Sequence record: NC_001338.1 | DNA: 15,465 nt | Direction: 5' to 3' (one strand) | Shown: positions 4,622 to 8,727 of the stretch, piece by piece | How the letters are laid out: each line of letters begins with the position of its first letter | Position numbering within the stretch: position 1 is the first letter of the stretch | Made by a program: the position numbers and the translations under genes | Notes under the pieces: model-generated | The model's database searches: none | Told to the model about the DNA's origin: nothing | Seen by the model: only the letters and a program-made list of their open reading frames with translations

Positions 4622-4960
4622 TCACTGCTTTGCCTTTATAAATCCTTGATCCGTTTGCTCAAAATTTGCGGGCTGGGCATCAAATATCTTAGCTATATTG
4701 TCTTGTGTTTGCTCTTGTTTTTGTTCTTCTTTCTGCTCTTGCTTAATCCATTTGAACGTTGTCTTTCTGTTTTTGTATTGTACTTCACACTCGTCTGGAT
4801 GTCTTTCGCAAATAGCTTTCAATGCTCTCTGTATGTTATACGCACTCGGGACTGAAATCTCAAATTGAGCTAGTATATCCTCTAACGTTAATTCACCTTT
4901 CTTTTCAAGAATTTTATACATTATTTCCGCCATCTTGTATGAATTTAGAGTTTGTGCCAT
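4622..4960 (-). CDS. f112: F112 winged-helix protein with C-x6-C pair and Q/E-rich tail
   Basis: LTLEDILAQFEISVPSAYNIQRAL HTH; CERHPDEC; first gene after the T5 promoter. Confidence 0.92.
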   Translation of the reverse strand: MAQTLNSYKMAEIMYKILEKKGELTLEDILAQFEISVPSAYNIQRALKAICERHPDECEVQYKNRKTTFKWIKQEQKEEQKQEQTQDNIAKIFDAQPANFEQTDQGFIKAKQ

Positions 4961-4971
4961 ATTCCCATCCC

Positions 4972-5034
4972 ACTCTATCTATACTCTATGTATAAATTAG
5001 TATTTAAGTCTTACTCTATCTATACTCTATCTAT
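4972..5034 (-). promoter_or_regulatory. T5 promoter: TATA box between two tandem 11-bp operator pairs (F55 sites)
   Basis: actctatctat 4972-4982, actctatgtat 4983-4993, minus-strand cttaaata 5001-5008, actctatctat x2 5013-5034. Confidence 0.92.
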
Positions 5035-5072
5035 CTCTCTATATACACAGTGTTTGGGTAACTGGCAAAATT

Positions 5073-5167
5073 CTGTCTGACTGCTGTCTGACAAGAGTTT
5101 ACTCTATCTCTCTATATCTATATACACAAACAGAGTTAGTCGACTCTGTGTATCTTATGTATCTTAT
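5073..5167 (+). promoter_or_regulatory. Upstream region of the UV-inducible transcript (Tind): several short repeats, no canonical TATA box
   Basis: ctgtctgac x2 (5073, 5084), acagagt/actctgt inverted pair (5130-5149), gtatcttat x2 (5150-5167). Confidence 0.65.
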
Positions 5168-5176
5168 ACAAAAAAT

Positions 5177-5326
5177 ATGGGATGTGCAAAATCTGAGCTA
5201 CTAATACTGCTTGAATATATAGATAGAGAGTGTAAGGACTACGAGAGTTGTAAAAGAATAATAGTAGAGCTAGAAGAGAGAGTGAAGAAAATAGCTTTCG
5301 TAGAAGCAATAAATGATTTGTTCTAA
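5177..5326 (+). CDS. b49: B49, product of the UV-inducible immediate-early transcript; not in the ORF track
   Basis: Hand translation MGCAKSELLILLEYIDRECKDYESCKRIIVELEERVKKIAFVEAINDLF*. Confidence 0.88.
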   Translation: MGCAKSELLILLEYIDRECKDYESCKRIIVELEERVKKIAFVEAINDLF

Positions 5327-5330
5327 ACTA

Positions 5331-5340
5331 CTTTTTTCTC
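5331..5340 (+). terminator. Oligo-T terminator of Tind
   Basis: cttttttctc 5 nt after the b49 stop. Confidence 0.7.
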
Positions 5341-5489
5341 TCTATCTCTATATCTATATATATACATAACTAAAACTAAAAGAATAAACAAAAAACTAAC
5401 AAAATCAACTCACCATTATACAAACTCAGAAAAACTATTTTTTTGTTATACTCTTACCCCATATATATATAGATATATAGATAGAGAGA
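5337..5489. repeat. 28-bp inverted repeat (1 mismatch) around a 97-bp AT-rich spacer; candidate replication origin
   Basis: Arms 5337-5364 and 5462-5489; spacer has 3 G on the plus strand. Confidence 0.7.
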
Positions 5490-5509
5490 GATAGAGTATA
5501 GTAGGGCAT

Positions 5510-5677
5510 TTAAGATTTTAGAAGTTCTTCAATGCGTCTTCTGATTGCATCTGCAACAAACTCTTGTCTGCTTATATATCCGCCCTTGCCTGACGCTATT
5601 AGTTCATCTATTTGTTTTGCTAATTCGATTGGAATCGAAACGGTCACATATTCTTTTTTGACTGATTTCCTCGGCAT
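5510..5677 (-). CDS. f55: F55 ribbon-helix-helix repressor of the carrier state; not in the ORF track
   Basis: Hand translation MPRKSVKKEYVTVSIPIELAKQIDELIASGKGGYISRQEFVADAIRRRIEELLKS*; CopG/NikR-type RHH pattern. Confidence 0.95.
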   Translation of the reverse strand: MPRKSVKKEYVTVSIPIELAKQIDELIASGKGGYISRQEFVADAIRRRIEELLKS

Positions 5678-5712
5678 ACGCTATCTATACTATATTAATA
5701 TGATAATATTAA
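5678..5712 (-). promoter_or_regulatory. f55 (Tlys) promoter with autoregulatory operator at the start site
   Basis: Minus-strand ATAGATAGCGT abuts the ATG (5678-5688); AT-rich TATA-like sequence ~5703-5712. Confidence 0.75.
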
Positions 5713-5726
5713 ATGATTCACGATAT

Positions 5727-5787
5727 ATAGATAGAGTATAGATAGAGTAAAGTTTAAATACTTATATAGATAGAGTATAGATAGAGG
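5727..5787 (+). promoter_or_regulatory. T6 promoter: TATA box between two tandem ATAGATAGAGT pairs
   Basis: Repeats 5727-5748 and 5766-5787; tttaaata 5753-5760. Confidence 0.92.
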
Positions 5788-5796
5788 GTTCAAAAA

Positions 5797-6099
5797 ATGG
5801 TTTCACCCCAAACCCGAAAAGAAGAAGAGTTATTAGAAAAACAAAATTCAGTTTTTTATTTGTTAACTTTAGGAAGGAAACCGTATGGTTCATATTTGCA
5901 TATAAAAATTGAACTAGACGAAGATGAAAAATTAGAGAAGGAAATCTATGCGGATAACATTAAGCTAGAGAATGAATTAAGACAACTGAAGAGGTTGTAT
6001 GAAGTATATCAGAGCGTAGAGATTGACGATGCTCAGAAAGCAATACAGAAGGAAGCATTACTGACGATAGCGAAAATACTAAGTGTTTTTGACTTCTGA
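5797..6099 (+). CDS. a100: A100, unknown function
   Basis: First ORF after the T6 promoter; charged helical protein. Confidence 0.88.
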
Positions 6100-7851: not shown

Positions 7852-8727
7852 ATGAGGAAGTCCCTTCTAGCCCTACTAACCCTATCCCTAGCGTTACTAT
7901 CGTTTTTAATAACACCATCGATGGCATTGAATTCTGGCGGTTCACCGATACCGATATATTATAACTATTATAACTACTATAGCCTTAACGCAGAAGGGTT
8001 TGGATTCAGTTTCAATAATAGCAATAATTGGGTTGAAACGAACTTTATCTCAATAACCATAAACTTACCTAGTTCATTACCAAATAACTATCAAATCAAT
8101 AATGCCTATTCTATCGTAGTAGGATTATCACCATATCCGGTTAGCAATATAAACATTTTTAATAGCCCATTAGAAGCATATGTTGAACTATTCTCAAACC
8201 CACCGAATACATATCCAAATGAAATAGGATTTGTAGTTAGTTACGGCTCAACTGTATTTTATAGTTATACCACACTGTATAGCAGTTTTGCGGGCACACA
8301 ACTAACAATAACTATATCATATACCGGAAATGGGTTTGGTGTGCAATTCTCTGACAGTAACGGGTTCTCTCACTCAGTTTCGGTAAGTTCGGTAAACTTT
8401 GTACCATATGGTGCTCTAATACTCGGATCACTAATCCCGAACGGGAACTATTACTACTACCCAGTAGGTAACATGTTACCGAATGCATCGGTGAACTTCT
8501 CATATACGATCTCAAGTTTCACAATAGAAGGAAACCCGGCCACATCCGTCGATATTACCACACTTGGATTAGAAGGAAACACTGCAATATATACTTCAAG
8601 TAGCAATTGGTTCAAATGGGTATCCGGTAGTGTGGTTATCACAAATGCCGTTGCCTATACCTATACCGATTTGGCTAGAATAGGAGGAAGTGCACAAATA
8701 AACTATACTGCATCGCAGCTATATTAA
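7852..8727 (+). CDS. a291: A291, predicted secreted glycoprotein
   Basis: Signal-peptide-like MRKSLLALLTLSLALLSFLITPSMA; N/S/T/Y-rich; sequons NNS, NAS, NFS, NYT; no C-terminal anchor. Confidence 0.92.
   Translation: MRKSLLALLTLSLALLSFLITPSMALNSGGSPIPIYYNYYNYYSLNAEGFGFSFNNSNNWVETNFISITINLPSSLPNNYQINNAYSIVVGLSPYPVSNINIFNSPLEAYVELFSNPPNTYPNEIGFVVSYGSTVFYSYTTLYSSFAGTQLTITISYTGNGFGVQFSDSNGFSHSVSVSSVNFVPYGALILGSLIPNGNYYYYPVGNMLPNASVNFSYTISSFTIEGNPATSVDITTLGLEGNTAIYTSSSNWFKWVSGSVVITNAVAYTYTDLARIGGSAQINYTASQLY

Follow-up and report, generated by a model that had tools for sequence, protein, structure and literature searches.

A conserved element between the b49 and f55 genes of the virus SSV1 combines a two-way terminator, F55-type boxes and the host origin motif ucm, and is a candidate replication origin

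The region between the convergent genes b49 and f55 of SSV1 carries, in the centre of an AT-rich spacer, an exact copy of ucm, a motif of the host replication origins. The spacer is flanked by inverted arrays of F55-type boxes and terminates the transcripts of both genes. These features are best explained as a composite cis module of SSV1-type fuselloviruses, and the best reading of the module is a replication origin gated by the repressor F55, to which we assign a probability of about 0.5. The window analysed here (15465 bp) is the complete SSV1 genome, identical to X07234 and NC_001338, and its coordinates are those of these records. In forty years of work on SSV1, no origin of a fusellovirus has been mapped. 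Reviews describe fusellovirus origins as uncharacterised and repeat an old proposal, also mentioned in the initial annotation of this sequence, that the SSV1 origin lies in the Tind–Tlys region. A recent preprint calls the centre of this region a two-way terminator and notes that it is rich in palindromes and was earlier proposed to hold the origin (10.64898/2026.06.17.732947). The exact host ucm turns 'somewhere near Tind' into a precise and directly testable candidate start site. The features of the element and its two neighbouring genes are as follows.

5177–5326, plus strand: b49, open reading frame; the Tind transcript starts at 5177 and is leaderless
5337–5364: left arm, array of F55-type boxes in minus orientation, with boxes at 5340 and 5348
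5365–5461: spacer of 97 bp, AT-rich and G-poor; two-way terminator and candidate unwinding region
5415–5425, plus strand: copy of ucm, ATTATACAAAC, exact at 11/11 positions; presumed binding site of the host protein UBP
5462–5497 (arm 5462–5489): right arm with outer box, F55-type boxes in plus orientation, a perfect one at 5476–5486 and a second at 5486–5496
5510–5677, minus strand: f55, gene of a ribbon–helix–helix repressor (PF01402); Tlys starts at 5686

The two genes converge on the element from either side. The arms are 28 nt each and 96 per cent complementary, with a sole mismatch at 5348, and the spacer (A48 T25 C21 G3 on the plus strand; 25% G + C) is as poor in G as the initial annotation had stated; its description of 28-bp arms with one difference around a 97-bp spacer with 3 G, between convergent genes, is reproduced in full. 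The element is the sole inverted repeat of the genome whose arms are 18 nt or longer, with no more than one mismatch and a loop of up to 300 nt. Every 97-nt window with at most 3 G on the plus strand begins within 5307–5383. The least stable 150-bp duplex of the whole genome is 5333–5482, at −158.7 kcal/mol against a mean of −192.9 kcal/mol (s.d. 9.9; about 3.4 s.d.). In a fold of the single-stranded DNA the arms pair with each other (z = −4.67), and none of 200 shuffled sequences folds equally well. A scan with Rfam returned nothing but sub-threshold noise from plant miRNA families. The cumulative GC skew has its minimum at 5201–5600, that is, at the element; we give this little weight because the skew is not separable from the divergent orientation of the T5 and T6 genes.

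The exact copy of ucm at the centre of the spacer is established. The motif was taken from the oligonucleotides of PMC12141716, which include the affinity oligonucleotide ATTATACAAACT and a control altering exactly the ucm bases. SSV1 is identical to the published Sulfolobus acidocaldarius oriC1 oligonucleotide at 14/14 positions (5415–5428). The motif lies 50 and 36 nt from the two arms and is the only copy in SSV1 at 0 or 1 mismatch; by chance, 0.022 copies would be expected per genome, and 0.0006 in a sequence with the composition of the spacer. The 11-mer is generally rare, with 0–13 exact copies per genome across 401 Thermoproteota genomes, similar to a reversed control, and it is absent from the six other fuselloviruses scanned (SSVK1, SSV2, SSV13, SSV5, SSV7 and SSV6). 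The core of oriC1 is 130 bp long, and within its AT-rich region ucm is situated halfway between ORB2 and ORB3, which are inverted; mutation of ucm abolishes firing of this origin, and the motif is also present in oriC2 and oriC3 (PMC12141716). It is bound by UBP, an abundant protein that also binds MCM, at its N-terminal part; on its own, UBP gives rise to salt-stable MCM on DNA, and it protects duplex DNA from melting (PMC12141716). The chromosome has 329 UBP sites, enriched between genes, of which at most three are origins (PMC12141716), so ucm alone does not mark an origin. A literature search, with most subscription journals outside its coverage, found no paper linking ucm to SSV1 or to fuselloviruses.

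The spacer has also been established as a two-way terminator, which serves both convergent transcripts of the switch, Tind (b49) and Tlys (f55). The GenBank annotation gives two termination sites for Tind, at 5346–5348 and 5451–5458. At base resolution, the starts of the region are at 4976 (T5, minus strand), 5177 (Tind, plus), 5686 (Tlys, minus) and 5784 (T6, plus), and the 3′ ends are at 5349 and 5459 on the plus strand and at 5428 and 5388 on the minus strand; that at 5349, named tTindB, was obtained by ONT-cappable-seq (10.64898/2026.06.17.732947). An oligo-T run precedes each of these four 3′ ends on its own strand:

T6 run 5332–5337, plus strand: proximal Tind terminator; 3′ ends at 5346–5349, inside the left arm
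T7 run 5438–5444, plus strand: distal Tind terminator; 3′ ends at 5451–5459, just before the right arm
T5 run 5430–5434, minus strand: proximal Tlys terminator; 3′ end at 5428, 3 nt before ucm
T6 run 5390–5395, minus strand: distal Tlys terminator; 3′ end at 5388

The terminator of b49 abuts the left arm and the f55 transcript, which runs from 5686 to 5428 or 5388, passes through the right arm, both as the initial annotation had it. Its comparison of the spacer with a duplex-unwinding element holds for stability, the element lying in the least stable 150 bp. The A-rich-then-T-rich make-up is fully explained by the four terminators, two sets facing each other. As in the spacer, archaeal two-way oligo(dT) terminators have T-runs on both strands with mapped 3′ ends, and consecutive terminators give alternative 3′ ends. 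Such terminators, however, require neither flanking inverted arrays of boxes nor a conserved central 11-mer.

Several further details of the transcripts were observed. The long form of Tind shares a 3′ overlap of 72 nt with Tlys (5388–5459); over this stretch the switch RNAs are complementary to each other and might therefore pair. Both mRNAs carry the identical 28-nt pyrimidine-rich arm sequence soon after the stop codon. An RNA contig from the run X10 starts at 5783, right after a template-switch oligonucleotide, in independent agreement with the T6 start at 5783/5784. A separate palindrome (ACAGAG … CTCTGT, 5130–5149) and a tandem 9-mer, GTATCTTAT, in two copies (5149–5166), are situated just upstream of the Tind start; both are unrelated to the F55 box.

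The sequence of the arms is not unique. The box TATAGATAGAG, searched with at most one mismatch, has 14 copies in the genome, all of them inside 4973–5786, for an expected 0.6, and this family agrees with the published F55 consensus, a tandem ATAGATAGAGT. The arms belong to this family, and the inverted repeat is thus two mirrored arrays of boxes. Box scores were calculated with a matrix derived from the eight boxes of the T5 and T6 promoters, which are arranged as follows:

4973–5035, minus strand: operator boxes of the T5 promoter, two tandem pairs around the TATA box; mirror of the T6 boxes
5724–5786, plus strand: operator boxes of the T6 promoter, two copies, annotated as 'direct repeat 1'

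Each arm has two boxes, which score 12–19 of 19 bits. Over 25 nt, the region of the right arm (5474–5498) repeats the array upstream of Tind (5100–5124) in inverted orientation with a single mismatch, and the left arm is an 89 per cent direct copy of the same array (5098–5124). On sequence grounds we regard it as established that the arms consist, in mirror image, of boxes of the type to which F55 binds, and not of ORBs. The box sequence is the same in the arms as in the F55 operators at the T5, T6, Tind and Tlys promoters of SSV1; F55 may bind the arms as well. The arrangement differs in two respects: the F55 operators sit at promoters, whereas the arms sit at the 3′ ends of genes, with no start site mapped there, and the boxes are spaced by 8 or 10 bp in the arms, against 11 bp in the operators. 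Within the b49 frame, one further perfect F55 box (5218–5228) follows the Tind start at a distance of 41 nt; no other box to the left of the element is in plus orientation.

No ORB could be recognised in the arms, in agreement with the initial annotation. A scan with TTCCAGTGGAAAC as the ORB core, at up to three mismatches, gave a single match (5624–5636, inside f55) where 3.9 are expected, and thus nothing above chance. Neither inverted ORBs nor mini-ORBs, which are expected at an oriC of Sulfolobales, nor any other ORB-like sequence was found in or near the arms, and no initiator gene (orc1/cdc6 or whiP) is adjacent. Two other properties of such origins are present, namely an easily melted AT-rich region between the boxes, here the spacer, and a ucm near its centre. 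The only AAA+ candidate of the genome is b251 (185–946), a weak AAA match about 4.4 kb from the element.

Protein-binding arms in inverted orientation, the duplex of lowest stability and a ucm at the centre together amount, in our analysis, to the architecture of oriC1. In both, inverted protein-binding elements flank an AT-rich stretch with ucm near its midpoint (ORB3, AT-rich region, ORB2 in oriC1); the ucm sequence is identical, and the cores measure 130 bp in oriC1 and 153 bp in SSV1. In contrast, the flanking boxes are ORBs in oriC1 and of F55 type in SSV1, the SSV1 element is adjoined by b49 and f55 instead of orc1/cdc6 or whiP, and, unlike oriC1, it also serves as a two-way terminator between convergent genes, its origin role being predicted. 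The likeness to an archaeal oriC proposed in the initial annotation is therefore strengthened in layout, which is conserved in relatives (see below), and limited in the identity of the boxes. A comparable geometry is known from another crenarchaeal virus with circular dsDNA, Aeropyrum globular virus 1: its putative origin, predicted from GC skew, is an inverted repeat of 23–26 bp around 93 bp, which is nearly the arm and spacer geometry of SSV1. According to its authors it is without ORB or ucm, and its sequence is unrelated to the SSV1 element.

The cassette was searched for in other genomes. At the DNA level, the region 4900–5900 matched only SSV1 itself among deposited phage and archaeal virus genomes, and SSV2, SSV5 and SSV6 have no such cassette, their first T5 and T6 genes being about 110 bp apart. 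A search with the F55 protein found the gene, at 86–94% amino acid identity, in an 18.3-kb IMG/VR provirus and in eight hot-spring metagenome contigs. An exact look-up added f55 in about 30 further contigs, among them the chromosome record CP001403.1 (L139), where the f55/b49 pair forms part of a provirus within a 2.7-Mb archaeal chromosome. Wherever the sequence extends far enough (loci L012–L019 and L139–L167), a homologue of b49 (74–84% amino acid identity) converges on f55. A review of 2022 describes both genes as unique to SSV1; contrary to it, F55 and B49 are not singletons. A degenerate pattern around ucm gave more than 100 unrelated chance matches in viral contigs, and the loci from L020 onward that came from this search were left out.

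These records comprise 14 distinct f55/b49 intergenic sequences of 144–391 nt, with spacers of 76–97 nt. In all 14, arrays of boxes adjoin both stop codons, in minus orientation on the f55 side and in plus orientation on the b49 side, and the arms likewise consist of two boxes with a spacing other than 11 bp. The exact ucm is present in 12 of the 14, roughly central, 25–50 nt away from either arm (25–45 nt from one arm and 29–40 nt from the other in the relatives). The two exceptions, the L008 (3169–3559) and L014 (3169–3328) types, have instead a fully palindromic spacer, in which the 10-bp palindrome GTGTTAACAC stands in two tandem copies between an A-run and a T-run; in L008, box arrays with C16 and G16 tracts form a second mirrored layer on the outside. 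The spacer is more conserved than synonymous sites: between SSV1 and L016 its identity is 83 per cent, against 48 per cent at the third positions of b49.

The comparison also revealed that the homologous spacer occurs in either orientation between arms of fixed polarity, and that ucm is retained through the inversion. The spacers of L013 and L012 are 96 per cent identical (73/76), solely as reverse complements, against 76 per cent at third positions (f55 is 88 per cent and b49 86 per cent identical in this pair). SSV1 shares its orientation with the L013 type; the L012, L016, L018, L019 and L140 types have the opposite one. After normalization of the orientation, one block of the spacer is invariant, and it contains ATTATACAAAC. 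The orientation is fixed inside each F55 lineage (30 loci), and four independent SSV1 assemblies (2019–2025) are identical to the reference through the element, in the same orientation as the sequence of 1991; since contigs drop rare variants, this result is compatible with rare flipping. On account of the single orientation in each lineage and in the SSV1 assemblies we reject a fast phase-variable switch and read the inversion as rare recombination between the arms. Independently of the function of the element, the comparison adds three observations: the presence of f55 and b49 beyond SSV1, the conservation of the element and the inversion of its core between fixed arms.

The origin reading can be formulated as follows. 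The module, laid out like oriC1 of Sulfolobus with protein-binding boxes in inverted orientation around an unwinding region that has ucm at its centre, would be recognized by host UBP, which would bind ucm and recruit the MCM helicase. As long as the virus is in the carrier state, F55 bound to the arms would prevent the region from opening. UV irradiation would release F55; transcription of Tind would then run through the left arm and across ucm, and the 150 bp of lowest stability would open for loading of the helicase. Tind is the first transcript to appear after UV, before replication. A spacer of this kind is proposed to work either way round, which would explain its flips in evolution by recombination between the arms.

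Several points stand against an origin. ORBs are absent and no initiator gene is adjacent; F55 is a repressor and not a known helicase loader; the L008 and L014 lineages replace ucm, and the module is missing from the six other fuselloviruses, which replicate without it; and base composition and the four 3′ ends are fully accounted for by termination. In addition, deletion of b49 or f55 leaves the virus infectious. As the module is confined to the lineage with f55 and b49, it may be an origin of the UV burst and not a general fusellovirus origin. The contrary points would be reconciled if the cassette were an accessory origin for UV-induced amplification that F55 holds shut, as it may be; this would fit the strong UV induction, which is special to SSV1. 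If the origin holds, the lysogeny repressor would be linked directly to the control of replication, and the virus would have copied the architecture of a host origin with its own boxes in place of the initiator boxes. A more specific version, which we put forward only tentatively, is that f55, box arm, ucm core, box arm and b49 together form a portable origin cassette under repressor control, which would use host UBP and MCM without ORBs or Orc1, would be shut by F55 and would fire after UV. If true, it would explain the strong UV-inducible replication special to this lineage and would provide a living example of origin modules common to extrachromosomal elements and archaeal chromosomes.

Of the alternatives to an F55-gated origin, the main one, to which we attach a lesser though substantial weight, is that the element is a terminator and insulator that stops the convergent transcripts and has no role in replication. 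The arms would then be extra F55 operators, acting as roadblocks or as loop anchors of a repressor complex, and ucm would recruit UBP for a chromatin role, such as stabilizing the AT-rich duplex at 80°C or blocking read-through. The oligo-T run before each of the four mapped 3′ ends is in favour of it, and the preprint authors take the region to be a two-way terminator; the arms fit the F55 box consensus, the TlysB end lies 3 nt before ucm, UBP has many sites, with an enrichment between genes, and guards duplex DNA against melting, and the module travels with f55 and b49 and is missing from other fuselloviruses. Termination in Sulfolobales, however, requires T-runs only. It leaves unexplained why an exact and central ucm is invariant through the inversion and why the spacer is conserved well above synonymous sites, and the geometry is that of oriC1. 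Because neither pure termination nor chance explains the exact, centred and conserved ucm, we place the origin reading well above the level at which the initial annotation left it. Chance itself, by which the element, without a function of its own, would have arisen from low-complexity operator repeats, is the least probable of the explanations considered. The box family does saturate 4973–5786 in both directions and forms many imperfect inverted pairs there, but comparative data already contradict this explanation, the layout being retained in 14 distinct sequences of several lineages whose flanking synonymous sites are near saturation, around a ucm that is exact and central.

Two explanations invoke recombination. 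The palindrome could be a site of recombination, resolution or packaging, extruded as a cruciform and cut or bound for the resolution of multimers or for packaging. The strong stem potential, the fully palindromic L008 and L014 versions with the nested outer layer of L008, and a 449-nt closed cycle that ends inside the spacer in one sequencing run (see below) speak for such a site; we nevertheless judge it improbable, as extrusion is unlikely with a loop of 97 nt and ucm has no tie to these functions. A packaging signal is in particular unlikely, since pSSVx is packaged with either SSV1 or SSV2 as helper and SSV2 is without the element. Still less probable is a programmed invertible switch, in which the arms would be recombination sites and a flip would alter the 3′ ends of Tind and Tlys and so set the carrier or the induced state. 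The opposite orientations of the homologous spacer between fixed-polarity arms in related viruses, above all the L013/L012 pair, speak for such a switch. Against it, the contigs that span the element in the four SSV1 assemblies and the sequence of 1991 have a single orientation, which is constant per F55 lineage as well, no invertase or recombinase gene adjoins the element, and T-runs face both transcripts whichever way the spacer lies.

The closed cycle was observed in the run X12, as a contig of 479 nt whose first and last 30 nt are the same (5296–5325). The resulting 449 nt correspond to 4986–5434 joined end to start, comprising the T5 operator, the Tind promoter, b49, the left arm and ucm; the part 5331–5434 is deduced from the length only. 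The contig has a depth of 51.5, where neighbouring SSV1 contigs have about 3.9; a small circle, a tandem amplification and an artefact are all conceivable. In SSV-K1, whose genome is without exact ucm, a 650-bp gap free of genes (L002:631–927; 8241–8537 of the record) contains four copies of a 22–24-bp repeat in alternating orientation and is another candidate cis element.
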